64,000 bases of DNA from Styela clava (lineage: Eukaryota). Positions within the stretch are counted from its first letter, which is position 1. The number at the start of each line of letters is the position of its first letter. The stretch lies in assembly GCF_964204865.1 (NCBI RefSeq), contig NC_135251.1, positions 12,214,001 through 12,278,000 on the forward strand, read 5' to 3'. The position numbers and the translations under genes were made by a program. The notes beneath the pieces were generated by a model, which saw nothing but the letters and a program-made list of their open reading frames with translations, was not told the origin of the DNA and did no database searches. Positions 1 through 63,698 of this stretch are shown piece after piece.

Positions 1-968
1 GTCCACGCGGCGTCGCTACGTCGTCCCTGGAAACTGACTTCGGCCTCTCAATTGAATTTAACGGAAGAAAAGTCAGAATTGTCATCCCGTCATATTATAT
101 GTCAAAGGTATGTTGTTTTTGCAATCTTAAGCATAAAACACGTATTGTTATGGATATCAATATAAATACTTTTATGTATATACACTCTATATAAGGTGAT
201 TTGATTTGTGGATAGCTCTTGAAAAATTGGTTGTATCTTACTAATGTCGACTCTACCAAATAGAACTGCATTGGTGCGTTGGACATTTTCTTGCCGGTGT
301 GATTATATCATTGTTCAAGCATTGCTCGTGTCCGGGGCTGTGAACTGGTAATCGGACTTAAAAAAATTGACATAATCGTGAAATCGAGGTCTCATACTTA
401 AACTCCACCGGAATTTCGCAGTTGGAATATGAGACATTCTATGATGATAATCGAAGTCAGGATTCCCAACAGAAACTAAAAACTGTCAAGTTACTTGAAA
501 ATGTTCAAGAAACAAATTAAAACCCACTGCATATGCCGACGACTTTGTCAACAAAATTTGGTTTTCTCGAGTTAAAATTTAAAGCCGGAGTCAAACTTGA
601 GTTGAGACCTTGTTTCAGAGTTCAAATTGTTAACCAGGAATCGGAAGTTGTTTTATAAATCACTTAAAGTTTGGGAGTCGCGTCAGAAAAAAATATTTGC
701 AACCCACAGCCCCGCTCGTAACTAATAATGAGTGGTAATTCTAACAATATGATTCATGTAAGTAAAATGCCAAAATTGAGCATTTCTTCATTCAGATGAA
801 CGGTTTATGTGGAAACTTCAATGGAATTGGAACTGATGATTTTGTTACTTCTTCGGGTCTATCAACCACGGACATCAATGAATTCGGAGACAGTTACAGA
901 CTCGACACATGCACAGCTTCAACAACAACTACAGCGTTTACTTGCTCTCCCAAATTCGCCGCAAAATG
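1..968 (+). CDS. Exons <1-107 and 796-968: C-terminal part of a VWD (von Willebrand factor type D) domain
   Basis: Spliced translation PRGVATSSLETDFGLSIEFNGRKVRIVIPSYYMSK|MNGLCGNFNGIGTDDFVTSSGLSTTDINEFGDSYRL. Donor GTATGT at 108, acceptor TTCAG ending 795, donor GTAATT at 969. Confidence 0.9.
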
Positions 969-3900
969 GTAATTGTTTGAACAATACAAATTTTAACACC
1001 TATGTAACTTGGGGCTGAAAATATTATAATCTTTTAGATAAAAGTGTACATCTCTCAGACCATAAATATTGCAAGCTGATAATAGGGTAATGTAAGATTA
1101 TCCTCCATATGCTATTAATGGCTGTTTGATAGAGACTTGAGCACTCTCAAAACCGCATTATCTGAAAAAAAGCTATGTGTGAGCAAACATCACAAAACCA
1201 AACTAATTGGGAACAAGGGGGAACAACGTTTGTGGAAAAGGGGCGGAGTGGAATGTACCAGTAGTATTTAAAATATAAGAAGAGAAAGGTCACATGGCGT
1301 TGATAAAAAAAGTTTTGCCAATCAGGGCATAATTTAGTACAGGGGTTCTCAACCCTGATCATGTGGTAGGACAACACGAAACGGAGTCGAAAAGATGGCG
1401 AGCACCGTATCACCAATACCCAGAAGTGATCTATTCATGGACTCGTGCCATAGATCTGTAGTATCACCAATATTTCCGAAAAGATGTTCCAGGACCTTAG
1501 ACTTTCCAGGGGTTCGAAAACCCCCAGGAATTCACGAGAAGATTTACAGGGGTACTTGGATGGCAGTCGAGTTTTTGTGTGTGTGTGTTTTTTTAATATT
1601 CTTTAACAAAGGAAAACTAAGTAACTAGAAGATATAAATGCATGCCAATTGAAACTCAGCGTAGATTTTCCCTGATCTAGCCGTGATTTTGACACAACAA
1701 TGTGAATTGCACAGCTTTTCAGCCAAACTATGAAATCTCAAAAGACAAAGTGATGCGAGTATTGCAGAAAGTGAGAGAACTTGAGACAGATCCCTAGAAT
1801 TCATTAGTTAGGTGGAGGACAAGGACAATAACATCAACACGAATATTTAATTTAGTTAAAGCAGTTGGTCAATAAATTGTCGTTGCAACAAATTGTCAGT
1901 CAATATATCACAACTTTGTTTGGTGTCCGATTACTGGGAGTTAGCGTTGATTGTTTCGTGACTCGGGAAACATCAACACGAATATTTAATTTAGTTAAAG
2001 CAGTTGGTCAATAAATTGTCGTTGCAACAAATTGTCAGTCAATATATCACAACTTTGTTTGGTGTCCGATTACTGGGAGTTAGCGTTGATTGTTTCGTGA
2101 CTCGGGGGGTTCTTAACAGAAAAAAGTTGAAAACCCTTGATTTAGTACATATATCACATATATTACTTTTATTTCTAATTTGTTTTTACGAAGACGGGGA
2201 CTTTTATAGATACAGAATAATTCTAAAATAATGAAATAAATAAAACCGGAACAATAGCTTGTAAATATCATCTGTATTACCATTTTGTATTGCACTCTTT
2301 TTTTCTTTAACGTCTTTTATAGGTCGTCAACAAAATATTGCGGAAAGATTACAGATACAGCTGGGGCTTTCAAGAAATGTCACGTCGTCGTTTCACCGAC
2401 AGCCTTCTACGAAAACTGCGTCACAGACCTCTGCGAATCGGGCGGAGATATGGATATACTGGAGGCCGTAAGATTGAGTTTCTGTTTAGCAATGCCATGT
2501 AGTTCAAAAATACTACTTTGAGCCGCAATGCAAAAATGTGTAATACAAACTGTATAATATGCATTATTCTACAGCTAAAAATTATAAAGTTAGCTCGAAT
2601 TTAGACAAATTTGGAATTCGAATGACATTTGGAAGGAGATTCGTAATAACAGCATCCTTACCGAGGATTAGTTGAAAAAAATTTGTCGAAATATTCCTAA
2701 TCACGCTACGCTATGCTGAAGAAATGAAGATGGGAACAAGCTATAATATAGTGTAGGAAATGCGTTGTGCAAACGCGGGATAAGCGTAGTATAAACTTGG
2801 GACTAGCGTGGGACAAGCATAGGATTAGCATCGGAAAAACGTTGGTCTGCCATCGGGCTATCTTGAGACTAGTGCGGGACCAGTTTAGCTTGGGACGAGC
2901 GCGATACAAAATGATTCAAAACAATACAACAATAATTTTATACCAAATATATTCTAGATTGTGGCTGCTTATGCCAGAGAATGTAAATCAAAAGACGTTC
3001 GACTTTGTAAATGGAGAGAAGAAACAGGATTGAAAATGAAATGTACTGGAAGTAGTTATTATGATGGATGTGCGAGTCCCTGCATTAACACATGCAATGA
3101 TCTTGATGCAGTGGGAAAGTACGATATTTTAAGTAATTAAACTGTCTATAAATTAAAACAAATTATGGATATTTGAATGTTTTGGCCACGACTCTAGGCA
3201 AAATTTCTTAAAACATTGATTGCTTTGAAAAAGAGCTTCATAAAAACCTCATAAACAAAGCCAAAGCGCATTGAACTGGGCTCGGTGGCCTTGCAAATGA
3301 AGCGTTGGATGCAAACTATGTTGGTATCGCATGTAAATAAGGTTTGCAAACCGTGTGACCCATGGTGTAATAAAATATTAGATAATGCTGAACAGGGAAT
3401 ATTTCGGATCTTTAAATGAAATAGAATCTGCTTACGAGCTCATGGGTGCTTGTTAAAGGCGTTTTTTGTATGAAACTAATGTAAATATATCAGATTTCTT
3501 CATTTGAAATACTTTGTTTCAGTTGTGGAGTTCCAGGAACAGTTGGGAGATGTGTTTGCAGACTTGGATTCCTATTTGAGAACGGGAAATGTATCCCGAA
3601 AAGCCAGTGTGGTTGTCAAATCAATAACGCATATCAATCGAAAGGTATTTTGTCTTTCAAGCAATATTTGACCAGTTAGAATTTGATAACTGAGCTATTA
3701 TTCAACATTCAATATCCGACGTTCTAGCTTCATCAAGCATGATAGAATATGATTCACATATGTATCCGGGGGAGGGGGAGGAAAGCCGATAAGACGGTTT
3801 AATCCTATGGGAACCCATAGCCTCTCATGTTTGTTACCAGTCCATCTGGGTATGGACTTAGGTAATTAGCTCAACCCGCGTTCCAGATGCATGTACTTTA

Positions 3901-6900
3901 TGGTTGAGGGAGCCGCAACAGACCAACAGATATATGAATCATCCTACAACATCGCAGTTATGTCGCACGCATGTTATGTATTATCCTCATGTGGGATTTG
4001 AACTAAAGCCTCGCTGGATAAAGCAATGAAAGGCGAGAATATCGCACGGATTGAATTTGAAAATTCGATTGGAGTTTCTGCTAAATTTCTTAAGTTTCCC
4101 CTTTTTATTTGCAATAAAAAGTTAATTACAAAAACTTATTAGTTTTTAATTGAATTATTGTGTGAACAAAAATTGTTAAAATTTAGGTTATCAAATTGTA
4201 TCCAATGATTGCACAAAATCGACAACTTGCATGGGGATGAATCGTTTGAAAATAAAGTATACCAAAGGATGCAACAAAAACGAGATGTGCGTAGTTTTGA
4301 AAGAGTATGATTATAAACCGTTCTGTCAACGTGTGGCCACAACTACAACTGCTATGCCAACAACACCTATCAAAATTGATAATGGTAAGATTTGAAATTA
4401 TTCAATTTGACGTGGGGAACTAGTGATTCTTGAATTAAATAATCAGCCGTTTAAACGTAAAAATACTTGAGTGCAACGTTCCCTGTAAGAGCTTGCTTAG
4501 TTGCGCGGAATAGAAGGCCATGTGAGCTTTAAAAATACGGTCTGCGCGGAAAATTAGAAAAAATAGAAGTGAACACAACATTTTAATACTTAAGCAGTGC
4601 GCGGCAGAACGGAAGTACTGCGCGGAGATTCTCGGCCAGCTACGCGGCGCAGTTTAAAGGAAACGTTGCTGGAGTGTTCATGTAATTCATTTTGAGTTGG
4701 TTTTTAATAACATAACAACATAAAATCATAATCTCCAACATTTATCTTTTGAATTTTTCAGTTATTTGCAAGTTTTTCTGTTTTCTAGTTCCAGTGCAAA
4801 AATCGTTTGTAAGAACTGCCGTAATTTCTCTGACCAAAAGCATGGGAAGATCTCTGGAAAAACTGATGAACATCAAGTCAAAATCACAAAGTATGTTGTA
4901 CATATCACAATTAATTAAAAAATGATTTCAACTGATTATTTATATTCAATTTATTCAACAGAATTGGACAAAAATGAAATTGTGTTGAATGAGGCAGCAG
5001 AAGCTACATTAACAACAATTGTGAATCAATTAGAAAATGTCGATACAGATGCAGGTAATAATATTACATTGAATTTATCGTTTTCTGTTAATTTACTAAT
5101 TAAATATATACTCTAAAACAGTTAGTTAATTTTATTTGTATACAAGAATAAAAACATTTGGCTGTAATAATTTTAACAAACCATATTTTACTTTGCTTTT
5201 TTTTACAGCTATTTCCGAGGGTTTGAACAATTTGAAAAAAGTCAGCGTAATGATGAATGTACAGGAAAAAGTCAGCCAAATTGGAAACAGAGTTAAGGAA
5301 TATATTATGCAAGAAGAGACAAGTATGTTTATATATAGAAATTATGTGTCAATTTTGCATGCAAATTCCTTCTTAGTACTTTCATACTGTTTGTCTTTTC
5401 CCGAGTTGAGTATAACGGTTATTTTTTATTATGAAGGATATCATAATAAATTATGTAGATACTATATAATAGCTTGTAAAAAAAAGGCTTTTGAGTCCTT
5501 CCAGATAAATTGAGTTGCGGTTAAATTTCAAAACATGACCGAAATGGCGCCCCATTAATTTGTGTCTATTCGTAGTAAATCCCTATTGTTTCTTTGTTAT
5601 GATGAAAAAATTATTTACTTTCAAATAATTTTCCGTTTAGCACTAAATGTTAAGTTGGTCAAATTATAAATAGTTTTATGTATTTTCAGCTGAGACCGAA
5701 GTTACACCTGAACAAAAAGTTGGGTTGATTCTAAAAGTTACAAAGGAAGAAAAATTACCAGAAATTACAAGCGAAGTTCTCAAAGGTTGGGAACTTATTT
5801 TTAAATGTAATTTTTTGATACGAAAGGGCTGTGAAGGCACAATTAAGCTGCCAAAAAGAACTATTACCACTACCATTTATATAAAAAAAAAAAAAATAAA
5901 TTTATATAAAGAAATGCAGTCCAATATTATTAGAATTCTTACTATTTTACATAGTAAGACTATTTTAATCTGCCACTGTTCTTTCTATACTACCGGAAAT
6001 ATCTTTCCATTCTTTAGAACAAACAAAACCTAATTATCAAGTTATACTTACTTCATCAGACTCAAACTCAATCTGCATTCTTTTATCCAGAAGGTGTAAC
6101 AACAATAACAAAGTATGGAACTCCAGAACTAATATCAATCATGATGTCACGGGAAATTCAAAACAAAGTGAAGGGACAGTTAACTTCATACACTAGATCT
6201 GTGGAACGGAGTCTTGAGGAAAGTGCAATGGCGCTGGCAGGTTTGTTATTTTGCTTTGCTGTTAATAAATTCAAAAATACGTACCCAAATCTAACCAAGA
6301 TCTAATGTTCTTTAACTTTACTTTGTAGGAACCTGTGGTTTTGCCAAGTTGAGTTGCAGCCACGGTTGCGAAACAAAAAATGGAAAGTCGTTTTGCAATT
6401 GTCCACCTGGATACTCAATGCTTGATGAAAACGGAAAATGTTCCTTCATTGGAGGTAATTTGTGAAATCGTTGTACTACACAACTGTCATATATGATTTG
6501 TAATTGATCATAACCAATAGAATTATATTTTATTTTGAAATCATAAATTTGTGAATCAATGTTGTTGATAAATAAAAATGAAAAAAAAAAAAATTTATTA
6601 ACTTGATTTTATTATTATTATTATTATTAAGTTTCTGTCGAATTGACCGCGTCTATTTCATCTGTTCCCGAAAAATTAAAACCAAAGTTAACTATCTTGA
6701 AGAAGCTTGAAGATGAAAACAAAAGACTAGAAAGTCAACTTCCAGAAGAAAGTGAAGAAGAATTACAGTTGGCAGGTATATTCTCGCTCTATTATAGCAA
6801 ACATTTCCACCCAAAATACTCAAGGAAGCGTTAAGAAAATAAGTAATGCAGTGGTAATTATCCTATAAAAGTCCTCCGCAAATAAATTTTCTGGAACGGT

Positions 6901-9900
6901 AAACAGATACATGAAATACTATATGCGTATTACCTCTTGGGGGCCAAATGTGTTCCCACGTATAGAATAAACAAGGTTATCCAAAACAAAAAATGACTGT
7001 TATGGTTTTAATAAACTTTTGTAAAACAAAACAAAAAAGCATAGTGTTACTTTTTTTACTATGGTTAAGATGTTTGAACATATGATTTTAGTAGTGAATG
7101 TATTGTATTGGGACTTGTATAAAATATTTAAATTTTTCGATTCCCATTTACATTTTTGAACAGCTGCGATTGCCAATACAGTGGATGGCTCTGATACTAA
7201 CATAATTGAAGTACTTTCAACAACTCTACAGCAACAGCAACATGAAGCAAAGCAGCAAATAGTAGAAGCTTTGACAGGTATTTTTCGTTCAACGTTTTTA
7301 CAATGAAAATTTGTATTTATGATTGTGTACAGTTTGTTCTCATTGTATATTGTCTGCGAATCAAGCATTTTTTTTTAATTTTCAAAAAAGAGAAATTTCA
7401 AAATTTCAAAACAGTTTTTATTTGAAAAAAGGGGGTTCCTATTAAATTTGTCTTTAATCATAGTTTAAAGCAATATTCATCAAAATATTTTATTGAAAAA
7501 TTACGAATTAATCAAAAATATAAAAATAAGGTTTATCACACAAATTTTGTTCTATCGGGTTGAAGTCTACATATTGACTTTCATAGTGGCACTTGACGTT
7601 TTAGGGATTTGTTTTCGCAAGGTAAGTTTGGCAATCTCGAAGAGAACGCATATTGCAAAATCAAAACCTAGTTCTAGTTTGCGCTAATGATTTGGTTTCT
7701 GTGAGACTAACTACTTAATCCGTCGTCTATGGCTCTATGCTTTTGTGCCGGTGGATCCGTATGCATATAATGTAAGCAGGCTGTAGCAAGAGTGAAGATA
7801 ACTATTCTAAGTGATTCGCGAGTCTTGCTGCACACTAAAACGTTACAAAAATATATTTGTGCTAGTGTGCAGCAAGACTCTTGAAACACTTGGGGTAGTT
7901 CTTGTTATAGCCTTCAATAAATGAATTTTTGCACCTGCATATATATCAGCTTCTTCAGTATTATCATAACACGGAAAATTATACATTCAGCGAAAGATGA
8001 AGTGGACACAGCCAACAATGCGGCTAACATGGCACAATCAAATTACCTCATGTTTATGCTGAAATCAACTGAGCCCATGGATGAGTTATTGGAAGCTGAA
8101 GAGCAGATAGAGAAAGCAGGTATAAGTTTAATCCTTATAAAATATGGAAAGAAATTTAAAAATTAATTATTAAACGGACAAGGATAATTACAGATACACC
8201 GGAACAGAAAAAAATGCTTCAGGACAAACTTTCTTTCAAACAAATGAACACAATAACAAAACAAACTATGACAGAAACAGTGGATTCAATGTATAAAAAG
8301 ATCGCAGGTAAGGCAATCTCGGCAGAATCTTGCCGATGCATTATATTACTGATGCATTATACTATTATTTGAGGGGAGCTGATTTGGATGACCGTATATG
8401 GTCGTATCGGTCGATCCCGTCTTTACCAAAAAAACAATGTTCATTCATTGTTTGTATGCTTTTATTTATTTGTTCTTGGTTGACAAATCAATAAATCTCT
8501 CTCCCTCTTTCTCTATTTTATTATGTATTCACATCTCTCTGTGGTTCAGAATCTTCGTCTTCAATGAATTTGAAAGATATCGTAACTTTTATGGATGTTC
8601 ATGAAACTATTGAATCATCAGACAAAATCCTCAACGAAGTAACAGAACGTGCACCCGTAAAACTCGATGGTAATATTGAAAGTTATGTTTATTGAATTTG
8701 ATTTCACAAAATTATGCAGATTTTTATATTTTGTATGTTTTAAATTGACTGTTGTTTGTAACATTTCATGGTGGGTTTTTAAATATGTTTTCCTATTGTC
8801 AGATTTTGTTGATCAGATTGATGATAATGAAGATATTGTATCAGCTATTAGCCAGGTTCAATTTACTGAATTAAATGAAGTTTGGGAACAGCCACAAACA
8901 ATAGAGGAATTGGGAATGCCACAAGATGTAATAACAATGATTGAATCAGGTAAAAATTACTTTTAAATTGTATTTTGAATGAAGCGATTATCTTATCGCT
9001 CCAACCTGATTCATGCTTCGTTTTTTTTCATCTATACATTCGATATTTCTGAACATATATTCTTTTATTGAGTGATTCTATAACTACACATTGATTTGAT
9101 GCAATTTTACAAAATATAAAATTATATCACTTATATTACAGTAACTGGGAAGAAACTATCAACCATCCGACTAACTTCAATTACAAGTGAAGCCTCATTT
9201 CCCGACTTGCTGAATCCCGAATCTATTGTTCAAGCTGAGAGTATGTTGAAACTTACATATGTTTATTTTTTCCTATATGTCATATATTTTGATGAAAATT
9301 GCAAAATTTATGACACATATGAACTGCTGATAATTATATGTATTTTCAATAACCTTTTTTTAATATATAAACCATAATAATGTCAATATTTAATTGTATT
9401 GCCAATTGTTATAATCATAACAATGTGGATTTAAAATAATAATTTACTCATTATAGAGGCCAAAATAAGCGTTATTGAAGACGAATTGAAACAAGATCTG
9501 AAGTCTAAGATTGAAATGCAATTTGCTCTTATGCAAGAGAAAGAAAATTCTGGAGCTAAAGGTAAATGTACTTTCATTTGAACCTTTTCTTCAACTTTGG
9601 CAAATCCTTGCTGAGTTGCACGACATTACCCTCACTCAGTAAGAAGTTATTTTATTTGAGATTCTTCTAATTGACTATGTGAATTGGATGACTTTGCCTT
9701 CAAGGAATTGACATTTAATGATATCGGGAAGAGTTGAATTTTCAAGTTATTGAATTAAGAAAGATATTTTATTCATAAATATAGAGAGTGCACAAGATAG
9801 AATATTGGCGGCAATTCGGAAAGTAACAGTATATCGACTCATGTGTAATGAGCATTTAAATCATCTTATACAATAACATCAAATTTAAAATGTTGATTCA

Positions 9901-12900
9901 CACAAGTTCCATTCTTGCATTTGCAGGACCAGGGTACGATATGACAAAACAAATTAACATGCAACTGGGAAATACGCTTATGCAAGAATATGATGATCTG
10001 GTCAATGGACAAGTTCAAGGTAGGCTTATCTAATTTTGTTATTCATTATTTGTTGTTTTCGTGACTGATATATTTTTATAAATCCAAAATCAATTTATAA
10101 ATTAAACTATGAAGTTTGTTAGGGTAAATGATATTAAGAAAGTAGTGATGAATACCTTAGTTCTTACCTAAAACAGTTTCTTTGCATAATATGAAAAAAA
10201 AATCTGAATCGTAAATGTATTTTCCGATATATATTGTTTTTCAAATCAATATGCTAAGCTTCTTAAACTTGAATAAATTTGTTCCAAATTTTTTTGAAGA
10301 TGTGGAATCCACTCTCAAGAGACACATTCAAGTTTCGGCTTTGATGGAATTCAACAAAGAAGCAGATGACATCATTCAATCTCTGAAGAGTACAACAACA
10401 TCAAATGGTTTGTTCTGTAATAATAATGTTATAGATTTAAAAATTGAAGATGAAAAACATACTAATATTTGCTATTAAAGATAGTATAAATGATGCTGGG
10501 TTAAATATGGCTCCTTAATTGCCAATCATCATGTAATCAATAGTATGGTTGTTTATACCAATACTTTATCGGGTGATCTTCCTATAAACACATTGGATAA
10601 CATAATCGTGTTAACATAATCAAGTTTGTTCACCAAGTCCCGCTTAAGGCTTAACTTTGACCTCATTAGGGGTCAAAAGTTGAGACCACCGGTACTCGCT
10701 TTTCTATAAACTTCAAAGCATATCAGCTACTCAGCCAATAAATCACCTTATCTCTGATTTTATATTTTATAGTTCCTTCTGATGATGAAAACACAAAGTT
10801 GGTCATTCTGGAGAAAATGGAAAGAGACGAAAAGGATAAAGAACAGTTGATTCAAGCTTACGAAGAGATTAAACTCGGTGAGAATTAATTAATAAATAAC
10901 AATTGAAATTCGATGATGTTGGTACTTGATACCTTATCAATTATCAATTTTATGAAATTTCCTATTTTCTAGAATATCAACAATTTAAACTCTATCTTCA
11001 TTACAATTTTACTTTTCAAAAAATTTGATATGATATATGTTGATCATGATATTTTCATTGATATTTTACAGCTATGCTCATAATATAATGATTTTTTTTT
11101 AAACAGGAATAGGAAAAGATGTCTCTTCTGATTCTACAAGAATGGTTGTGAAACGAAGAGCAGTTAATTCAATGAAACTGCAGTTATCATTATTAGATGA
11201 AAAAATACAAAGCATGATCACTGAGGCTGCTGAAATTACGAGAGGTTTATAAATATATATATATCATATTGTGTTTTGAATTCAATAAAACTTCTGATGC
11301 ATGAAAGAGTCTCTATATGTATAAAGTATATATAGTTCAGTCACGTTCTCGCTGAGGACGCACAACCTTTTAGTTTTTTATGAGACATTTTTAACATTTT
11401 CAATTCGGAAAAAGCTGAGTGCAAGCAGCCACGGATATGTAAAGAACAACTATTTTTGCAAAGACTGAAATCCTTTCGGTACAGGATAGCTAACCCAATT
11501 TACCATTTCCATCTTTAGTTGAGGTGAACTTGGCGATAGGATCGAGATGTTGCGATAATTAGGCCTCCGAATCCAACATCCTTTTATCAACGTTCAACCA
11601 CTACTAGATTATCGCATTTAACTTTTGTATATGATTAATGACATTTAAATTACTCGTTACCTCATTATTTTAGGAAAATGTTCACTACAAGATAAATGCA
11701 TCTACGATTGCGATAAATTGACTGGGAAATGTACATGTCCTCTACATATGAAATTAGACTCTGATGGCAAATCTTGCTCTCCTGGTACGTTTTGCTAAAT
11801 TTGTATAGCACTCAGATATATTTTCAATCTATAAACTACATAAATCAATTTAAATAAAATTACTAGACGGGAAGTTTTGATCGAAGACTTTCCAAATCAT
11901 TTGTAAAAAAATTTGTTTTGTTTTTTCCAGTTCCTACAGAAGAACTTCAAGTTTCTGAAGCATCTCCAAGTTTAATGCAAATCATTTTAATCCATAAACA
12001 AGAAGCAGAAACAGTCAAACTTCTTGAAGACTCTATTTCTGAAGACATAACATCAGATGAGAAAGCTATTCTAGGTAAGTGCAATTGGATATGTCGATTA
12101 ATATGACCTTTGAATTTTGATCAACGTTATTGGCACATTCCTAAATATACCTAAAAACTAAAGATTGCATCGTCAATATAGCAAAAATGAAGTCATGAGA
12201 TACAAACAGAATGGAATATGCGAATGGAAATACACAACAAAGTTCCTTTCAATATGTAAACCATACTTTTAAATTTAGATTTCATAAAAGCAGAAGAATC
12301 CAAAGGCAAAAATCCGGATGACGTCACCCGAGTTCTTGTAAGTATGGAAGAGGTCAGGGCAGCAGATATGTACAAAAATGCTTTGAAATTAGGGGGCACA
12401 GAAGCTGGTGAAGATGTTGCATTGCAAAATAGTGGAGAAAAGTACGAAGAAGCCTTGATACTTCAAAATGTTCTGGATAAATCAAAGGCTTTGCAAGGAA
12501 TTGTTGAAGTGGTTACCAATGAAGGTAAAGCATTTTATTAAATATAGATGACTTGATATATTATATATGTAATGTTGGCATTTTAACAGCATATATGATG
12601 TAGAAAAGATAATATGATGCTCAACAGAAACACTTTTGAACGTCCAAATTTTTCACTTTTTATTTATCATGCTTCGTTAATAATATGACGCTTCACATAC
12701 CTTATTCTTTAGATGATGCTTTTGAAGATGGCTCAGCGATGACTCAAACCGTTGCCTATCTCACTGAAGCACGTATAGATAATGCAGTTCTCAAATTCAG
12801 TTATGAAAAGCAAATAGGTAATTTTGCTATTGCTATTGGTTCAAAATTCTGATGAAACAACTATTTTTATAATCTGTACAAGACAACTGCATTTATGTAC

Positions 12901-54900: not shown

Positions 54901-57900
54901 TCCTTGAATTCAATATTTGTTTTTCAGAGAAAGAACAAAAACTCAAAGAAATAAAAGAAAATTTGGAACGTGACATCGAGGAAAAGATGAAAGAACAAGA
55001 GGCTGCAGTTGCAGAAAAGAAGGAAAAGCTTGAAAAATGTAAAAAAGAAAACCCTGCTGGAAAAGGAAATGGAAAATCTCCTCACGAAAGATGTGGAGAT
55101 GAAAGTGGTAAACACACACAATGGATTATGTCGGAATACAATTTTTTTCTTGCAAAAAAAGTTTACTTCTTTTAGCATTAAAATACTCTTAATTACTATT
55201 ATTTTCCTCTATTAATGATATAAGTAAGTTTTATGACTATATGGGCTGATCTGATTTATATAGAAAAGTAAGTAACTTTTGAAAAATATCTTTGAAGTCT
55301 GCATTTTATTGCTCATCTCACTGCGCTCATGACAATTTTTGTGATGCTATGTATAATTTTGTTTTTCATCCATCTAAATTCAGATACAAACAAGCAGGTG
55401 GAAGAAGCAATGAAAAATGTTTATGAGAAGTTGAAAAAAGCAAAGACTGAAGGAGGTTTGAATTTTATATAATTTAATTACAAAAGAATAGAAAAATTCT
55501 TAATGGCATAATATTTCAATTTAGATTTAAAGACTGCTGCTTTTAAACATGCCGAACTAACAGCTGTGGCTAAGTTTGTAGGAAAAGTTGATAAATTTCT
55601 GGAATCTGAAAAAGACACAGAAAAAGGTCAGTTTCTGTTTAATATGTTAAAAATTTCCTAGTTTTTAATACTTTTCATTAAACAATTATACAAAATTATA
55701 TATTGCTTCTTTAGACAAAATTATAATGAGCCCATCCGACAAAGAAGAAATGAGAAACAAACTAGTTGAAGAAATGAAAAATAGCGGCATCGTACCAGTC
55801 GTTGAAAACAAAGCTGCAATGGGTAAGTTGGTCAAGGATTAAGTTTTCAAATTATAGGTTTTTTCATACTAAAAGTTACATTTTCGACTGAAATAGATGC
55901 TGTGAAGCATATTGAGGTGCCGACCGAAACGTTGAGGAACATTTTACAACGTAAAGTCGTTAAAGATATTACACAAAGACTTGTTGAACTTGACGAAATT
56001 ATCGGAAAGAAAGTTTTGAAACATGCGAAATCAAGTGAGAGTAAGTACAAGTTTAATGGAATATATTTATACAAAATAGAGAGAATCAGAAAAATAACAT
56101 TTGTTTCTGCGCCAACAGAAAAATGCTCAATATCGGAATTAAAGTGCAGTCACGATTGCAACAAACTGACCAAGAAATGTATTTGCTACGAGGGAATGAC
56201 TCTTGTTAACGGAAGACAATGTGTATTGAAGAAAAGTAATATATAATTGTCCTTTTTAAAATCTTATTACTTTGCTTCAATTTTTGTTAGTGGTTGATTC
56301 AATATTACTATTCCTATTTATTGATACATGCATAATTCTAGATATCCACTATGTATTTATATTTTAATAGGATTTTTAAATTCGGTAAAATTTAATACTT
56401 TTTTTTTCTCTCAGACATTACAGATGGAACGGATGTCTCAAAATTCCCTCAAGAGATATCTCTTTCTTTAATGCTACGGAAGGAAAATAAAGAATATCTT
56501 TCAGTAATAAAAAATGATACTCAAGCACTTAAATCTGATGATGAAAAGAATATGGAAGGTAAGTTATTGTCATATCAGATATCTAATTAAGGTAATATTA
56601 ATTATATTAACTTTTATTAACTCATTCAGAAACATTAGCAAGTTTAGAAAAGAAGGGATTACTCTTGGATGATCTAATTACTGCCCTCGCACATAAAAAG
56701 AAACTTGAAGTGACGAAGGTTTATGAAGCTGATTCTGACAATGGTGAAACCGAAGATCAAACATACAACGAAGAATACGAGGTATTGAAAAGAGCAAAGG
56801 AATATCAAGAAGCTGATTCTTTACAGACATTATCAATGAAACGTAAATCATTTGAAAAACTTCTTGATGCAATGAAAGAAACGGATAAAGGTAATATTAA
56901 AATGCCAATTTTGGATATCTGTCTTGGATTAGTAAATAGATATACATGGTACAATTTATCAAACTTTTTTTGTTTCCTGCAGATGAAACAACACTTGATG
57001 ATAATGATGATAAAAACACTCTGTTGGTGCTAAAATATATTGCGGAAACAAAAGTTGATAAGAAAGTTGAAGAATTGACTCAAGCACTGAAAAATAGTGA
57101 GTAATTTTTTATCTTTTCTTTAAGAAATTTCGTTTTTGAAAACAATTGTGACAATAATATTTTTTTTATTAGATTCTGACGTCTCGTCGAGGCTAAAACT
57201 TCTGGATAATCTGGGAAAAATTAAAAAGTTGAAAAAAGATTCTGAAGAAGAAATTGATTTGATAATTAAATTAGAGGAAAAAGTGAAAGATGATAAGGGT
57301 GAGGGTAGAATTTTATTCGTCATGTGCGGCATTTTGTTAATATAGTTGACTCTACACATATAAGCAACAAATGGCTATTTGATGAACTATAATTAGAATA
57401 AGGTATTTTTGTTTTTTTATTGTTCATTGAATATTAATCACGAGCAACTCATTTTTATGTTGAGTCATCTTTATTTTTAAGATTGTAATGCAAAATTCAA
57501 CTCGAAAGTATATTCTGTAAATATTGTTTATTGCCACAATTACTCAATTCTGTTATTTGTTTTCCAGAAGATCATCCCATTGAAGAAGTTGATAATCTGG
57601 ATGAAAAATCTGAAACCAAAAATCTTGAAAAATATTCTAAAGACATAATTGCTGAAATTGCGGAAGTGGAAGGTCAAAATCCAAAAGGTGAAATAATATT
57701 CGAGAACAATAACTTCAATTTGATATTTGATTTTGTTTGATAATATTTTTATTTTCTGTTTAAAACATGAAAAATACAATATGACTAATCGTTTTGTGAT
57801 AAAAAAAAAACGTATTAGGACTGAGTAATTTTATAATGACTTCTGCCTCACAATAATCTGCGGAAGTTCTACAATCCTTTTTACTCGATTGTATTCTTGT

Positions 57901-60900
57901 ATTATGATATTTGTTGTTACAGTGTGAAAACATATTTCAGCACGTCAGATTACTTCAACCAGTTCCTTGAATTCAATATTTGTTTTTCAGAGAAAGAACA
58001 AAAACTCAAAGAAATAAAAGAAAAATTGGAACGTGACATCGAGGAAAAGATGAAAGAACAAGAGGCTGCAGTTGCAGAAAAGAAGGAAAAGCTTGAAAAA
58101 TGTAAAAAAGAAAACCCTGCTGGAAAAGGAAATGGAAAATCTCCTCACGAAAGATGTGGAGATGAAAGTGGTAAACACATACAATGGATTATGTCGGAAT
58201 ACAATTTTTTTCTTGCAAAAAAAGTTTACTTCTTTTAGCATTAGAATACTCTTAATTACTATTATTTTCATCTATTAATGATATAAGTAAGTTTCATGAC
58301 TATATGGGCTGATCTGATTTATATAGAAAAGTCAGTAACTTTTGAAAAATATCTTTGAAGTCTGCATTTTATTGCTCATCTCACTGCGCTCATGACAATT
58401 TTTGTAATGCTATGTATAATTTTGTTTTTCATCCATCTAAATTCAGATACAAACAAGCAGGTGGAAGAAGCAATGAAAAATGTTTATGAGAAGTTGAAAA
58501 AAGCAAAGACTGAAGGAGGTTTGAATTTTATATAATTTAATTACAAAAAAAACGGAAAAATTCTTAATGGCATAATATTTCAATTTAGATTTAAAGACTG
58601 CTGCTCTTAAACATGCCGAACTAACAGCTGTGGCTAAGTTTGTAGAAAAAGTTGATAAAATTTTGGAATCTGAAAAAGACACAGAAATAGGTCAGTTTCT
58701 GTTTAATATGTTAAAAATTTCGTAGTTTTTTATTACTTTTCATTAAACAATTATACAAAATTATATATTGTTTCTTTAGACAAAATTATAATGAGCCCAT
58801 CCGACAAAGAAGAAATTAGAAACAAACTAGTTGAAGAAATGAAAAATATCGACATCGTACCAGTCGTTGAAAACAAAGCTGCAATGGGTAAGTTGGTCAG
58901 TGATTAAGTTTTCAAATTATATGTTTTTTCATACTAAAAGTTACATTTTCGACTGAAATAGATGCTGTGAAGCATATTGAGGTGCCGACCGAAACATTGA
59001 AGAACATTTTACAACGCAAAGTCGTTAAAGATATTACACAAAGACTTGTTGAACTTGACGAAATTATCGGAAAGAAAGTTTTGAAACATGCGAAATCAAG
59101 TGAGAGTAAGTACAAGTTTAATGGAATATATTTATACAAAATAGTGAGAATTAGAAAAATAACATTTGTTTCTGCACCAACAGAAAAATGCTCAATATCG
59201 GACTTAAAGTGCAGTCACGATTGCAACAAACTGACCAAGAAATGTATTTGCTACGAGGGAATGACTCTTGTTTACGGAAGACAATGTGTATTGAAGAAAA
59301 GTAATATATAATTGTCCTTTTTAAAATCTTATGACTTTGCTATAATGTTTCTTAATGAGTGACTCAATAATACTATGCCTACGTATGAATGTGTATGTGC
59401 ATATTTATATATCTTTATTCTGTATAATATAACATACAGTTATTGGAATTTTCAGTCAAAGAATACATTGAAGTTGTATTTTTGATTGAAGGATTTTACA
59501 TTCGGTGAAATTTAATTTGTCTTTTTCTCATAGACATTACTGATGGAACGGATGTCTCAAAGTTTCCTCAAGAAATTTCTCTTTCTTTGATGTTACGAAA
59601 GGAAAATAAAGAATATCTTTCAGTAATGAAGGAAAATATTCCAACAAATGAATCTGAGGATGAGAAGAATGTAGAAGGTAAATGATTCGTTATATCAGAT
59701 ATCTGATTCAGGTATCATTCAATCATAATATTTGTGTTCACCTTATTCAGAATCAATAGCAAGTTTAGAAAGGAAGGGATTACCCTTGGATGATCTAATT
59801 ACTGCCCTCGTACAAAAAAAGAAACTTGAAGTGACGAAGGTTTATGAAGCTGATTCTAACGATGGTGAAACCGAAGATCAAACCTACAACAAAGAATATG
59901 AAGTATTGAAAAGAGCAAAAGAATATCAAGAAGCTGATTCTCTACAGAAATTATCAATAAAACGTAAAACATTTGAAAATCTCATTGATACAATGAAAAA
60001 AACCGACGAAGGTATATTAGAAAATTTAATTTCTATTTCGAAATTGCTTTCAAACATGTCACAAATTAGCTTTTAAATTGTTTTTCTGTTTTCCTGAATC
60101 AGATGCTGATGATAAAATTAGTGAAAATGTCGGAGACATATTGAAACATATTGCTGATACAAAAATTGATACAAAATTGATAGAACTTTCTGAATCACTC
60201 GATAAAAGTATAATGACTGATTCTGACATCTCTACTAGTCTTAAGCTTTTGTCCAAGATGGGAAAGATGAGGGATTTGGTTGAAGATTCCTCTAAAGAAG
60301 TTGAGGCATTGTTTGATATTGAAAAAGTTATCAAAGTTGAGAGTGAGTTGACTATAGTTTTATTTTCATAAAAGTGAAATGGCGTCTTAGTACATAATAT
60401 ATATTTTAAAATTAATATTGTTTCATAGAAAAAAATACAGAACTAAAAGAAATACTGGAGAAAGATCTAAAGGACTTATTCGATATGGAGAATCTTAATA
60501 ATGAAGATGAACTTACTAATTTGGATTCTTGTGTTTTGATGGAAGATAGTGAAAAAGACTTACATAGAAAAGATGATGATAAAGTTGTCTGTGATCCAAA
60601 GAAGGGTATATGATTAGATTGGTATCTTGGAGTTTTCAAGCAATAAAGATTTCATATACTATTTAATTTATTGTTTCTTCCAGAAACCAGTAAAGACAAG
60701 ACCTTGAAGAAAGCTGAAGAACAACTAAGGAATGAATTCAAAAATCAATTTGAAAAATTAACAAATGGCAATAAAACTGATGGTACGAGTTCATTATTCA
60801 TTTTTATGCTCTAAGACCATTTATATTAACTTTATGTAATGAAATTAACTGAAAATGATTAGAGGTTTATTTATCCAATTTAACAACTTTAGTTGTATGT

Positions 60901-63698
60901 TCTCTTGCAGGAATAAAATCACTGTTGAAAAGTCAATTGCGTCTCAAAGCCGTGTCTGATATTTTGAAGCGTACAGATTTAATTTTGGATATGACAAAAA
61001 AAGCTACAAAACCTAGCACTGAAGTACCCAGTATTCCAGGTAATATAGTATTCTGCCATATTTTCCATTGGGAAATATCTGATTTGCAACTATTCATTTA
61101 TTTTTAACTCATTGGTCATAAACAATATATTTTGCAGAACATGTAGAAAAAGGTATTGTGAAAAGATATATATTGAATGAAATGAAAGACAATGATGAAG
61201 AAGTGGATTCGGAAGAGCAAGAAGGTATGATGGAGTATGTTTATTGTTTTTGTAGAATAGGATAGGATTTACATATTTATCCTAGGGAAGAGAAAAACCA
61301 ATAATACGGTTTAATCATATGACGAAGCACGGCCTCTCGTCCGGTTATCAGTCCATGTAAGGTATGGGATTAGTTAGCCAGTTATTTGTTTTCAGATGCA
61401 TGGACTTCGTGGATTGCATGGACTGTATCATATTTTGGTTAATCGGTGGGAAATACTACTATATATGAATTGCAACAATGTAATTATGTGATCGTAATTT
61501 TTCATATAGAAGATGAAAATTTTAAATTTGACATTTACTCTAACAGAAATAGCAAAGGAATTACCAATATCAATGGATACATTGTCCAACATGATTCGCC
61601 GAAGATCTGTCAACTCACAGGAGAAAACCCTTGCTGCTCTAAGAGAAAAAATGAAAGATAAAATCAAGAAAAATGCAGAAGCACATAAAGGTATTGTATT
61701 AATATTGCTTTGAACAACATGCGCCTAAGTTCCAGTAACAATATTAATGTACATTTGTATATTCATATAATACAATTTATATATTGAAAACAGAATCAGT
61801 TTTTTTAACATCATATGGGTCATGCGATTTCCCTGGCATTGAAACTGAATCAAATCATGTCGTAGAAGTTTTTGTCATGTATTGAGTTCTTTCCAATGTG
61901 TTCTAATTATTAATATTCTGAATATAACTTGAAAAAGCAACTTAGTCTAACTACGTGAATCACCTTCGATGACCTAAATGCTAATCTCAATCTATCTTAA
62001 GCATTTAAGAAATTTGTTTTAATTTCCGAAGGTAATTGTAAGATTACCGAATTAAAATGCTCCTCTGATTGTGATAAACTGAGAAGAATATGCATTTGCA
62101 ATGGTGGAATGATTCTTGATGCAGACAATCGCACATGTATACCAGCAACCGAGCAGGGTATGCTTTGTTTGCATTATTAATTTTGATTTGATTTATGCTC
62201 GTATGTACCATGGACCATGGTATGAACCAGGGGTGTGCAAACCGAGGCCCGCGGGTCAAATGCGGCCCGCAAAGAAGAATTGTGCGGCCCGAGGAAAAGT
62301 GCTAATTTTGAAGTATGTGCCCTCGAAACTAGTTTTTAGTTTTAATAATCTGGAACGTGTGTGCAAATCAACCTCTTTGCGTCCCGAAGCCTATACCAGT
62401 AACCGAGTGCCACTGCCATATCAGTGAAACAAGCTAGCAAGATCCTGATGGAAAATACACAATGTTATAAAAGAGTGTTCATTTTTAACTGAATCCGTTC
62501 AGAATCGGTGTGACAACAAATTCAAATAGCAGTTTTCTTTAGAAATTTTTACGTTTCAATTCAACATTTTTTCCAGAACTCCGAACAATGCCGTAAGATC
62601 GATAACCAAAAAGAAACTATTTTTTGTGCTTGCAACTACAGTAGACTCTATTTAGGAAAGGCTTCAAATACGAAAAATCCAACTTACGAAAATTATTTTC
62701 GTAATAATATATATTTCATCTACTAACGTAAGATTTTCTACATACGTAAGGCCGAAAACAAAAAACGCGTGTAGTGATATTCGTTTATTTTAGATTAATT
62801 TAATGAAGTGGTTATAGCAGGGATGTCCAATTAGAATTTATTATTCGAATATAATTTTATGTGTCTGTAAGAATACCGAATTCCTAGAGCCATCGTCAAC
62901 ATTTTGATTTAAAACATTTCACAATTATTTCATATTTTCATGTGCGTTTGCTCGTTTTCGTACATTACGTTCTCTCTCAGATTTCAACATTTAACATCTT
63001 TTCCGACCGCCGTCCTACACTCTCCATGGTCTTAGCCTCTCTAGTAAATATTATGTCCGAGTTTTGTGAGAGCTTGGAATGGATTAATGCATTTTCATTC
63101 ATGCGTCCGTACTTACGGAATTTTCTACTTACAATAGGGGTAGGAACAAATTAATTTCGTTCCGATTACGGAAACTCCTTCACAAGTAGAAAATGATTTT
63201 TTAAGGTACACATGGTAAAAAGAAATAACAAGGAAATACTGAATAGATAATGCAAATTTTTCGTATCCAGCGGCTTTCGTAGGTAGAGTTTCTAGGTGCG
63301 GATCGCGGCTTCACCGAGTTACTTACTGTAATTGGCCCGCCAGTAAAAAAGGTTGCACACCCTCGGTATAAACGACACATTTTTAATGTAATGTATTAAA
63401 CATGGCCATTATGTACCTTTCGATATCTATATACAGTATACTCAAACTAATATTTTTTTATCAGCAAATTTGCGTGACTTTGGAATAATGTTCCACATAT
63501 ATTATGAAAACTTGATTGATCTGCTTTAATCATATAAAAAAAACTTATTTTCATTTGCAGAAATTTTATCCGCCAAAACTAAAGCTCCACAAGATGTACT
63601 TTATGCAGCTCTCTTACTCACTGAAGAAAGTAACAAATTAACGACACTGAAACAATCAATTCCCAAAGCTTTGAGCAAAATAGAAAAAAAAGCAGAAG
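1..63698 (+). CDS. Giant multi-exon gene, incomplete at both ends: VWD-C8-TIL-TILa region followed by 14 EGF + acidic helical modules; likely secreted/extracellular; ~165 exons and ~9,000 aa within the window
   Basis: Successive GT-AG bounded exons join in one continuous frame. Recognisable VWD motif (TDFGLSIEFNG...GLCGNFNG..DDF), C8, TIL and 14 six-Cys EGF exons. Exon order and size recur from module to module. No start or stop codon falls in the window. Confidence 0.88.
333..714. mobile_element. Degenerate non-autonomous hAT-like MITE
   Basis: TIR cggggctgtg ... cacagccccg. Flanking 8-mers ctcgtgtc / ctcgtaac match 6/8. Internal ggagtc-type motifs. Confidence 0.55.
1340..2139. mobile_element. 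Non-autonomous hAT (Charlie-like) element, 800 bp
   Basis: TIRs caggggttctcaac ... gttgaaaacccttg. Perfect 8-bp TSD atttagta (1332-1339 and 2140-2147). Confidence 0.88.
1830..2106 (+). repeat. 139-bp direct tandem duplication inside the hAT element
   Basis: acatcaacacgaatattt...gtttcgtgactcggg occurs at ~1831 and ~1970, essentially identical. Confidence 0.92.
2323..3118 (+). CDS. Exons 2323-2467 and 2958-3118: C8 domain and start of TIL domain
   Basis: YCGKITDTAGAFKKCHVVVSPTAFYENCVTDLCESGGDMDILEA|IVAAYARECKSKDVRLCKWREETGLKMKCTGSSYYDGCASPCINTC matches the C8 pattern F..CH..V.P..FY..CV.DLC and YA..C...WR. Intron phases are consistent. Confidence 0.9.
3523..4384 (+). CDS. Exons 3523-3644 and 4187-4384: end of TIL, TILa-like domain, Thr-rich linker
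   Basis: CGVPGTVGRCVCRLGFLFENGKCIPKSQCGCQINNAYQSK|GYQIVSNDCTKSTTCMG...GCNKNEMC...FCQRVATTTTAMPTTP. The C.C..GF....G.C.P..QCGC signature is typical of TIL/TILa in zonadhesin and FCGBP. Confidence 0.85.
3752..4015 (-). mobile_element. Probable tRNA-derived SINE-like repeat (copy 1)
   Basis: Shares acatat.tatcc...acggtttaatc.tatg...gcctctc...cagtccat...ggtatgg...cagatgcatg.actt with 61268-61450. gggatttgaac at ~3993 is a reverse-strand pol III B-box (gttcaaatccc). Confidence 0.55.
4474..4668. mobile_element. hAT-type MITE, 195 bp
   Basis: TIRs caacgttccctgtaa ... tttaaaggaaacgttg. 8-bp TSD cttgagtg / ctggagtg matches 7/8. Internal tgcgcgg repeats. Confidence 0.8.
4789..13807 (+). CDS. First A-B super-unit of helical modules, including EGF1 (6329-6454) and EGF2 (11674-11784)
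   Basis: Phase-1 exons: 4789-4890, 4962-5054, 5209-5322, 5690-5785, 6091-6240, 6329-6454, 6632-6775, 7164-7277, 7991-8119, 8194-8307, 8550-8669, 8803-8949, 9142-9240, 9457-9561, 9927-10019, 10300-10407, 10773-10877, 11107-11244, 11674-11784, 11931-12074, 12279-12524, 12713-12817, 13085-13210, 13575-13673, 13757-13807. All lengths are multiples of 3 and stop-free. Confidence 0.8.
6329..6454 (+). CDS. EGF-like domain exon 1 (type A)
   Basis: GTCGFAKLSCSHGCETKNGKSFCNCPPGYSMLDENGKCSFIG: six Cys, CxCPPGY. Confidence 0.9.
7809..7891. repeat. Intronic inverted repeat (hairpin)
   Basis: Perfect 18-bp stem gagtcttgctgcacacta (7820-7837) / tagtgtgcagcaagactc (7863-7880), extendable with mismatches; 25-nt loop. 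Confidence 0.85.
11674..11784 (+). CDS. EGF-like domain exon 2 (type B)
   Basis: GKCSLQDKCIYDCDKLTGKCTCPLHMKLDSDGKSCSP. Confidence 0.88.
14369..23927 (+). CDS. Second A-B super-unit, paralogous to 4789-13210, including EGF3 and EGF4
   Basis: Exons 14369-14479, 14731-14829, 15147-15263, 15491-15595, 15819-15992, 16698-16829, 16983-17132, 17427-17540, 17810-17914, 18072-18206, 18361-18486, 18703-18732, 19158-19298, 19488-19592, 19935-20126, (20171-20206 tentative), 20507-20602, 21024-21137, 21452-21559, 21880-22023, 22326-22445, 22659-22799, 22931-23146, 23236-23343, 23802-23927. Example match: NLQKVTVLMNIHAKV...VEEYL versus NLKKVSVMMNVQEKV...VKEYI. Confidence 0.8.
16270..16579 (+). mobile_element. 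Helentron-associated / DINE-1-like non-autonomous rolling-circle element
   Basis: Subterminal inverted repeats acttatcgat (16275) / atcgataagt (16542), a (ctgt/gtcy)n microsatellite near the 5' end, a short 3' hairpin (tcgatctctgaccga) and T-rich termini. Confidence 0.65.
16698..16829 (+). CDS. EGF-like domain exon 3 (type A)
   Basis: GSCQITGLKCSHGCQANSHGKTVCKCPPGYKMVEGNTYQCTKSK. Confidence 0.9.
22105..22216. mobile_element. Hairpin MITE, copy 1
   Basis: ~40-bp inverted arms ctccagaagtacgcgcaccaagatgtcgcacaacctgaa / ttcaggttgtgcgccatcttggtgcgcatacttctggag; homologous to 26933-27046. Confidence 0.8.
22326..22445 (+). CDS. EGF-like domain exon 4 (type B)
   Basis: EKCGLKELKCSHDCDKFLQVCICFGGMVLSNDKSTCIVPE. 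Confidence 0.88.
24357..25980 (+). CDS. Acidic low-complexity linker exons (24357-24488, 24780-24836, 24963-25019, 25176-25406, 25528-25980)
   Basis: E/D/K-rich phase-1 exons with canonical splice sites; the last one carries the 17-aa repeat. Confidence 0.75.
24718..25055 (+). repeat. Tandem duplication (~183 bp period) of a 57-nt micro-exon with its intronic flanks
   Basis: acaacacaaaacg...ttggaaattaaggaagaac...gaaaattcaggtat recurs as acaacacagaatg...ttggaaattgaagaggaag...gaaaattcaggtat. Confidence 0.85.
25630..25935 (+). repeat. 51-bp coding tandem repeat, ~6 copies, encoding EKDDKDKYDGKEKDDGD
   Basis: Recurrent gataaagataaatacgatggcaaagagaaagatgatggtgatgagaaa inside exon 25528-25980. 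Confidence 0.9.
26435..29988 (+). CDS. Module containing cationic exon 28066-28209 and EGF5 (28546-28668)
   Basis: Exons 26435-26608, (26741-26779 tentative), 27078-27173, 27249-27356, 27647-27751, 28066-28209, 28546-28668, 28983-29132, 29408-29647, 29881-29988. EGF5 = EKCGLPALGCSHDCDLSSEKCICSAGMTLGGIGGKTCVWNE. Confidence 0.8.
26933..27046. mobile_element. Hairpin MITE, copy 2 (GGG...CCC termini)
   Basis: gggcgcttcagaagtatgtgcaccaaggtggcgca ... tgcgccatattggtgcacatacttcgagagtaccc; shares the core gtacacatactat.ttcaggtt with copy 1. Confidence 0.8.
30157..30419. mobile_element. Tc1/mariner-type MITE
   Basis: TA|cagggtggtagctaagaaaatagaaaatttgtcaaacag ... ctgtttgacaaattttctgttttctggcgaccaccatg|TA: ~40-bp imperfect TIR and a TA TSD. 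Confidence 0.8.
30513..35585 (+). CDS. Giant 5,073-nt exon encoding ~181 x KTKDGEDSP
   Basis: Acceptor AG at 30511-30512 and donor GTAAG at 35586, phase 1-1. The unique N-terminal part (DVQEEDDSNYQVLNAIVEVNRKLKELKE) is homologous to the same exon slot in the next module (39246-39365). Confidence 0.85.
30623..35508 (+). repeat. 27-bp coding minisatellite (aagacgaaggatggcgaagatagcccc)n, ~181 copies
   Basis: Visible directly. Substitution variants only, with no frameshifting indels across ~4.9 kb. Confidence 0.98.
35885..39847 (+). CDS. Module containing second cationic exon 37523-37666 and EGF6 (37733-37852)
   Basis: Exons 35885-35959, 36233-36415, 36726-36824, 36898-37008, 37253-37336, 37523-37666, 37733-37852, 37989-38132, 38595-38822, 39076-39174, 39246-39365, 39440-39547, 39668-39847. 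EGF6 = GNCKISEFGCSHDCDILSKKCICPHGMKLDSETKTCQWNE. Confidence 0.82.
40062..42845 (+). CDS. Exons of the first 3.06-kb unit (template for the other copies)
   Basis: 40062-40133, 40203-40304, 40393-40500, 40575-40718, EGF7 40797-40913, 41094-41237, 41309-41569, 41662-41775, 41853-41975, 42244-42363, 42666-42845; all phase 1-1. Confidence 0.85.
40797..59300 (+). CDS. EGF exons 7-13 (40797-40913, 43861-43977, 46932-47048, 49997-50113, 53059-53175, 56119-56235, 59184-59300)
   Basis: Each encodes EKCSIS(E/D)LKCSHDCNKLTKKCICYEGMTLV(N/Y)GxQCVLKK between CAG and GTAAT. Confidence 0.9.
59534..63698 (+). CDS. Diverged module after the array, EGF14 (62032-62157) and the next exon (63561-63698)
   Basis: Exons 59534-59677, 59751-60011, 60103-60342, 60429-60605, 60684-60782, 60911-61039, 61138-61224, 61547-61690, 62032-62157 (GNCKITELKCSSDCDKLRRICICNGGMILDADNRTCIPATEQ), 63561-63698. 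The last exon ends in a GT donor, so the gene continues. Confidence 0.82.
61268..61450 (-). mobile_element. SINE-like repeat (copy 2, truncated)
   Basis: Colinear similarity to 3752-3905. Confidence 0.5.
62228..63365. mobile_element. Non-autonomous hAT (Charlie/Chaplin-like) element, ~1.14 kb
   Basis: TIRs caggggtgtgcaaacc ... ggttgcacaccctcg, subterminal gcggcccgc motifs at both ends, and an 8-bp TSD gtatgaac / gtataaac matching 7/8. No transposase ORF. Confidence 0.85.

Follow-up and report, generated by a model that had tools for sequence, protein, structure and literature searches.

A Styela clava locus likely to encode a giant mucin-like protein with an orphan helical-EGF centre

What kind of protein joins a mucin-type D assembly to a long chain of Cys-poor helical segments, each of which holds a single EGF? 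The question is raised by a stretch of 64,000 nt from the Styela clava genome (hereafter, the window), the host assembly being eukaryotic and 377 Mb in size. According to the analysis described below, the window is likely to be the central part of one S. clava gene of at least 111 kb, and its product may be described as a secreted, mucin-like protein, polymerised through D assemblies and having an orphan helical-EGF centre.

Extent of the gene and its D assemblies

The exon chain of the plus strand was rebuilt by dynamic programming limited to phase-1/1 exons. The procedure was trained on the tandem cassette found in the second half of the chain and recovered the exon boundaries supported by RNA; intron phase 1 itself was read at the nucleotide level from RNA splice joints. 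The predicted exons at 7587, 9785, 11385, 13757, 16479, 20180, 30278, 38240, 62231 and 62425 were discarded owing to low scores (the last two are false, being absent from the NCBI model P0001), and two missed exons were added. The edited chain, from 4187 to 63698, contains 160 exons and 8,784 codons. Stop codons were found neither within the exons nor in any of the 159 codons split by junctions. All introns of the chain are in phase 1, with a median length of 178 nt; the longest is 1,403 nt, and a gap of intergenic size does not occur. Since every intron of the module chain is in phase 1, whole modules can be duplicated in frame.

The gene overruns the window at both ends. According to the NCBI models P0001 and P0006, the stop codon is located at ~+76.1 kb, ~12 kb past the window end, and the protein ends in a tail of ~190 aa that contains Trp and Cys and has no cystine knot. 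The whole protein probably comprises ~10,000–12,000 aa, with ~9,900 aa between the last D assembly and the stop codon; when the upstream D assemblies are counted, a size of ~12,000 aa is probable. Together with the ~8,800 codons open in the window, this bears out the initial annotation, made from the letters of the window, which had proposed a giant protein of at least 9,000 aa; its end coordinate, 63698, is the exact end of the last in-window exon. A correction concerns the extent of the gene, with D assemblies being found upstream and module 15 and the stop codon downstream.

In the last D assembly before the modules, Pfam analysis performed exon by exon revealed VWD, C8 and TIL, in that order (Table 1). 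The VWD tail exon (766–969) scored 25.5 bits against a cut-off of 22.9, and the C8 exon (2258–2518) 39 bits against a cut-off of 23.7. The end of C8 and the start of TIL share exon 2958–3137, and TIL ends in exon 3485–3676. TIL was detected as two exon pieces, each of which scores under the Pfam cut-off because introns split the domain. Of the VWD-C8-TIL-TILa order proposed initially, VWD and C8 stand above the cut-off and TIL stands in sub-cut-off pieces; the TILa label was not confirmed, as the exon at this place (4187–4384), Cys-rich and suitably positioned, showed no Pfam match at E ≤ 1. Its phase is that of the module exons, the first helical one of which begins 577 nt further on. As separate observations, a 139-bp unit in a D-assembly intron is duplicated in tandem at 100% identity (1,830–2,106), and bases 1,352–1,500 match contig C17 at 97%.

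Five VWD N-termini were identified on the same strand upstream, at −34.8, −28.4, −23.5, −7.9 and −0.9 kb from the window, and three of the upstream VWD domains start with a GDPH motif; the N-terminal part of the protein would thus hold at least five D assemblies. In addition, a Mucin2_WxxW (CysD) domain was detected by Pfam ~17 kb upstream in two exons (L006 2,765–3,269; 29.6 and 32.9 bits, cut-off 22.4), and an EGF scoring slightly below the Pfam cut-off is present at −18.5 kb (L006 1,501–1,692). Two further domains on the same strand are candidate members of the gene, namely, a Sushi exon at −35.3 kb (L012 4,678–4,866) and a hemicentin-type VWA_4 domain at −49 kb (L011 905–1,850). In the ~50 kb of upstream DNA examined, the 5′ end of the gene and its signal peptide were not found. 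A composition-blind phase-1 chain over these 50 kb was mostly noise because the D-assembly exons use mixed phases.

Table 1. Features of the locus, in window coordinates
Feature	Position	Strand	Remarks
Last D assembly before the modules	1–3676	+	Pfam, exon by exon
VWD, C-terminal half	~3–107 and 797–968	+	domain start 947 bp before the window (12213053)
C8	~2324–2467 and 2960–3030	+	Pfam
TIL	~3030–3132 and 3525–3644	+	Pfam
Cys-rich exon after TIL	4187–4384	+	phase 1/1; ends in a short Thr-rich linker
Predicted exons	4598–4681 and 4789–4890	+	retained in the 160-exon set as candidates
M1 (beta flavour)	4962–9561	+	~13 exons, 517 aa; EGF exon 6329–6454
M2 (alpha)	9927–14479	+	~462 aa; EGF exon 11674–11784
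M3 (beta)	14740–20126	+	~563 aa; EGF exon 16698–16829; four helical exons pair with those of M1
M4 (alpha)	20507–26779	+	~772 aa; EGF exon 22326–22445
Acidic low-complexity exons, M4 tail	25176–25406 and 25528–25980	+	low-complexity linker
M5 (alpha)	27078–36415	+	EGF exon 28546–28668; hosts the nonapeptide exon
Nonapeptide exon	30513–35585	+	single 5,073-nt phase-1/1 exon in M5; ~181 copies of KTKDGEDSP
M6 (alpha)	36726–39928	+	~529 aa; EGF exon 37733–37852
Tandem 3.06-kb cassette	39662–60022	+	6.6 copies, 91–96% DNA identity; self-comparison
M7–M12	unit starts 40062, 43125, 46196, 49261, 52323, 55384	+	cassette copies
M13	58447–60605	+	cassette start; exon 60103–60342 at its end
M14	60684 to past the window end	+	unique sequence; EGF 62032–62157, e6-like exon 63561–63698
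Exons in RNA contigs	60103–60342 and 61547–61690	+	spliced
EGF exon starts	6329, 11674, 16698, 22326, 28546, 37733, 40797	+	tblastn and exon chain
EGF exon starts, continued	43861, 46932, 49997, 53059, 56119, 59184, 62032	+	tblastn and exon chain

Modules, cassette and nonapeptide exon

Fourteen modules are present in the window, the last of them (M14) running past its end, and a 15th lies downstream, with its EGF at +69.2 kb. In general layout, Cys-poor, K/E/L-rich, amphipathic and predicted-helical exons surround one six-Cys EGF, and the module length is generally ~450–560 aa. In the M4 tail, exon 25528–25980 (453 nt) encodes a 17-aa Asp/Lys-rich repeat present six times, and a 57-nt exon is duplicated (24780 and 24963). 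The e4 position of M5 and M6 is occupied by 144-nt exons of the plus strand (28066–28209 and 37523–37666), open in phase 1. In contrast to the usual acidic helix, they encode cationic sequences rich in Trp, Tyr and Ile, with the e4-like hydrophobic-basic motif kept in the middle of the exon.

Clustering of the exon peptides distinguished two flavours of modules, beta (M1 and M3) and alpha (the others). The alpha modules share e1, e4, e6, e7, e8 and e11-type exons to varying degrees, and their last, e11-type exon closes with a two-Cys loop. Identity between paralogous helical exons is as low as 18–32%, and comparison of the alpha and beta e6 helical exons in hhalign gave no significant similarity. 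The initial description of 14 repeats of one ~450–500 aa module was therefore correct as to the number of EGF modules in the window and incorrect as to their likeness: seven are near-identical, whereas M1 and M3 have nothing in common with the others beyond the EGF exon and the layout, which are common to all 14.

The near-identical modules, M7–M13, are made by the copies of the tandem cassette. One unit was translated into eleven coding segments, and tblastn with these segments located the same ones in every unit. The cassette module measures 498 aa (496 aa had been given initially) and is encoded by 11 exons of 72, 102, 108, 144, 117 (EGF), 144, 261, 114, 132, 120 and 180 nt. Among the six full copies, exons diverge at 1.7% of sites vs 3.75% for introns, and pN/pS is 0.34. 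The coding part of the cassette is under purifying selection, and the seven-copy array as a whole is a recent example of in-frame module duplication.

As for the EGF exons, the EGF-like segment of the cassette was found by tblastn at 13 sites of the window, and the 14th site is the EGF exon of M1. The exons match the six-Cys spacing C-x(4-7)-C-x(3-5)-C-x(6-10)-C-x-C-x(8-13)-C, and all six Cys are retained in 14 of the 14 in-window exons. When 11 EGF exons were aligned, four Cys proved invariant and each of the other two occurred in at least 90% of rows, the sole exception being the EGF of module 15, in which the first and third Cys are absent. The profile built from these 11 exons matched PDB sequences of the EGFs of thrombomodulin, LRP6, LDLR and factors IX/X with E values of 1e-5 to 1e-3. 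Pfam assigned the 11 members to FXa_inhibition (8), cEGF (5) and EGF (2), with all scores under the gathering thresholds. Both the six-Cys pattern and the profile matches to solved EGF domains agree with the initial claim of one EGF exon per module.

The non-EGF exons are composed of 15% K, 14% E, 9% L, 8% D, 2.2% P, 2.8% G and 0.4% C. Their hydrophobic periodicity peaks at 90–110 degrees per residue, at 1.4–1.8 times the level of shuffled controls, with a deficit in the beta range. AF2 modelling of exon e7 with six paralogues predicted a helix, an acidic loop and a second helix, the pLDDT of the latter being 75–86. For P0002, which contains the EGF and three helical exons, the single-sequence AF2 model is all helix after the EGF, with a pLDDT of 38, too low for a confident tertiary model. 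Composition, periodicity and the AF2 model of e7 moderately support a helical secondary structure of these exons, in line with the Cys-poor, E/K-rich helical exons first noted on both sides of the EGF. A bundle of these helices around the EGF, as named in the initial annotation, would be one possible arrangement. A complex prediction for the N-half (e1 to EGF) and C-half (e6–e10) of the cassette module, taken from P0006, scored 0.16 against a mark of 0.34 and speaks neither for nor against contact between the halves.

The base composition of the window is ~30% GC, except for ~5 kb at 30.5–35.6 kb, where the nonapeptide exon of M5 is located (GC 47–55% vs 30% around it). Its 27-nt unit is repeated with 94% matches and encodes ~1,690 aa in total. 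Every nonapeptide has one Ser, one Thr and one Pro (33% Ser/Thr/Pro), and K, D and E dominate. An ORF of 1,663 aa on the minus strand (30,604–35,595) was rejected as a gene, being a by-product of the 27-nt repeat on the opposite strand.

Transcripts, database models and search for relatives

Four public runs labelled as probable RNA were used, and three of them yielded spliced contigs for positions 56,950–62,949. GT..AG joints were observed for e11-e1-e2-e3-e4, for e5-e6 and from e7 to exon 60103–60342. One contig of 1,230 nt extends from e8 through e11 and then over e1–e7, thus crossing a module boundary. The depth is low (3–25), and the support covers 57–62 kb. Within these 5 kb, the exon junctions of the cassette and the connection of one module to the next are borne out by spliced contigs. 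This speaks against the possibility, raised by the initial annotation itself, that the region is several separate genes or is untranscribed.

The NCBI annotation divides the region into pieces. LOC120335987 (“uncharacterized”, formerly “myosin-11-like”) is represented by isoforms X3, X1 and X2 (P0001, P0006 and P0007, respectively), and LOC120335994 by P0002, a protein of 221 aa that covers M5 from the EGF to e8 and starts inside exon 28066–28209. P0001, P0006 and P0002 reproduce the rebuilt exon junctions. P0001 comprises four modules, namely, the last two cassette units, M14 and M15, and joins the exons ending at 62157 and starting at 63561 directly. The NCBI models are considered truncated, since they lack a signal peptide and their start is either an internal Met (exon e3) or falls within an intron. 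The difference between the isoforms of LOC120335987 (2,009 vs 2,505 aa) corresponds very nearly to one cassette unit and looks like a mapping artefact on 95%-identical repeats rather than alternative splicing.

Two repeats of other kinds were found in this part of the window. A dispersed repeat with at least 88 genome matches at 70–83% identity (62,400–64,000) occurs in the longest intron (62157–63561); at 62,400–63,400 it is outside the protein. A short dispersed intronic element at 61,290–61,410 is also present at ~3,753–3,866, L007 7,740–8,018 and ~+72.9 kb, and each of the four runs contains RNA contigs that match it, hundreds in number and very deep. The element has no counterpart in Rfam and is not a recognisable tRNA; it looks like an abundant SINE/MITE-like repeat.

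A search for relatives of the helical module was carried out in several databases. Pfam analysis of P0001 and P0002, used in place of the hand-spliced 496-aa module, gave only weak cEGF matches and left the helical module unmatched; in P0001, which reaches the stop codon, no CTCK, VWC, VWD or myosin family was found. The module had no match among PDB sequences and no usable match in the ESM Atlas, and the catalogued helical repeat families (spectrin-type and others) did not match it by sequence in Pfam, PDB or the Atlas. Among 1.84 billion representative proteins, the e7 profile found only P0001 and P0002, both from this locus, beyond two spurious matches (P0003 and P0004), which were rejected as unrelated repeat proteins. 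Searches of a set of 5.8 billion proteins, bounded by length windows, retrieved only the queries themselves. When P0001 was compared with all six reading frames of the complete S. clava genome, it matched this locus only, and a literature search for the locus and its accessions returned no mention. At the level of sequence comparison, the helical module is thus without a detectable relative. The initial view that it lies outside known families was upheld, and the confident match to a known family that was to count against this view was found neither in Pfam, PDB sequences and the ESM Atlas nor in the two protein libraries.

Alternative readings and possible role

Could the region consist of several adjacent genes, a D-assembly gene ending at ~4.4 kb being followed by one or more helical-EGF genes? 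The separate listing of LOC120335987, which starts inside the cassette, and LOC120335994 by NCBI is in favour of this, as is the location of the RNA support, which is away from the junction at 4.4–5 kb and from M1–M6. However, the database models begin internally and lack a signal peptide despite their disulfide-rich EGFs, the RNA contigs cross module boundaries, the frame remains in phase 1/1 from 4187 on without a stop at the 159 junctions, and no gap that might hold a terminator and a promoter exceeds 1.4 kb. The truncated starts, the unbroken phase-1 frame and the lack of an intergenic-size gap weaken this explanation, and it is considered unlikely. A decaying expansion, in which an amplified cassette is transcribed at a low level and no functional giant protein is made, would agree with the low RNA depth, with the very recent amplification (91–96% identity) and with the failure to find an orthologue. 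Against it, all 160 of the 160 exons are open, the exons are half as diverged as the introns with the pN/pS value given above, and even the diverged modules M1–M6, M14 and M15 keep open frames and splice sites, with all Cys retained in the in-window EGFs; this makes decay very improbable.

The E/K-rich helical composition and the earlier automatic NCBI name might point instead to an intracellular coiled coil of the myosin-tail or trichohyalin type. This seems hardly credible: neither myosin nor any other cytoskeletal Pfam domain was found in P0001, the six-Cys EGF of every module matches extracellular EGFs, all module introns are in phase 1, the phase typically seen when extracellular modules are shuffled, and the chain follows a D assembly without a break in the reading frame. 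A single gene for a secreted protein is therefore the reading preferred here.

Among secreted proteins, long helical segments are combined with EGF-type domains in multimerin/EMILIN, tenascin, thrombospondin/COMP and laminin, where each chain contains a single coiled-coil stretch and the EGFs stand side by side in arrays. None of them is known to have a module of ~500 aa of helix with a single EGF repeated 15 times, and no sequence similarity between them and the module was found in Pfam or PDB sequences. The bacterial giant rods of the Ebh/FIVAR-GA type are very long extracellular chains of helical bundles and contain neither EGF nor D assemblies. A functional analogy with them as a rod or spacer is possible; they show no sequence match, and a bundle fold of the S. 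clava module would be hypothetical.

With FCGBP, zonadhesin and alpha-tectorin, the S. clava gene shares tandem VWD-C8-TIL assemblies (five on this strand within 35 kb), the GDPH motif in three of them and the lack of a C-terminal cystine knot. In those proteins, the chain goes on with further D assemblies, ZP, MAM or TM segments, whereas here it consists of ~7,500 aa of orphan helical-EGF modules and charged nonapeptides. A study of Ciona noted that VWF and gel-forming mucins differ mainly in centrally acquired modules (PMC6109156), a pattern into which the S. clava gene fits. N-terminal D assemblies, CysD/WxxW and one very large central tandem-repeat exon are features common to the S. clava gene and the gel-forming mucins/VWF, including Ciona Ci-GFM1 (PMC6109156). 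Unlike in these proteins, Pfam found no D4-VWC-CK tail in P0001, and the gene is not filed as a gel-forming mucin for this reason. In addition, the repeat is a K/D/E-rich polyampholyte with 33% Ser/Thr/Pro, and the centre is mostly helical rather than PTS. The contrast with mucins drawn by the initial annotation cannot be kept in its original form, as the gene has a 5-kb exon of 181 repeats, CysD/WxxW upstream and multiple D assemblies, of which three carry GDPH. An aberrant mucin/FCGBP-like protein is a better description than something unrelated.

The analogy with VWF, mucins and FCGBP suggests that, within the secretory pathway, D assemblies would join the chains into multimers through disulfide bonds. 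The helical-EGF modules may serve as long, semi-rigid spacers of high charge; the nonapeptide tract, disordered and mucin-like, may contribute hydration and flexibility. The combined product would be a polymeric extracellular fibre or gel. The tail-to-tail dimerisation of VWF and mucins cannot simply be assumed, because the C-terminal cystine knot is absent. Judged by the same analogy, a component of mucus, of a coat or of a matrix appears to be the likeliest role; the filament, matrix or adhesive protein suggested initially is likewise a hypothesis. A further idea, tentative and rather doubtful, is that the helical-EGF module represents a new extracellular building block, a Cys-poor helical rod or bundle of ~500 aa pinned by one EGF and repeated 15 times behind polymerising D assemblies, and that the protein is the fibre which gives structure to some secretion specific to ascidians, for example the mucus net of the endostyle, the coat of an egg or larva, or an adhesive. 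If true, a mucin could be built without PTS.

Among D-assembly proteins (VWF, gel-forming mucins, FCGBP), the S. clava gene would be an extreme case of exchange of the central region, its centre being a charged nonapeptide tract together with ~7,500 aa of an orphan helical module. Its all-phase-1 exons and the seven-copy, 95%-identical cassette illustrate clearly how duplication of modules in frame enlarges a giant extracellular protein. S. clava is an invasive ascidian and a widely used model; its public annotation lacks the gene as a unit, and annotation-based proteomics and single-cell studies will miss or mis-assign it. If the protein is a component of the filter-feeding mucus net or of another tunicate-specific secretion, it would provide a molecular handle on that secretion that is currently lacking.
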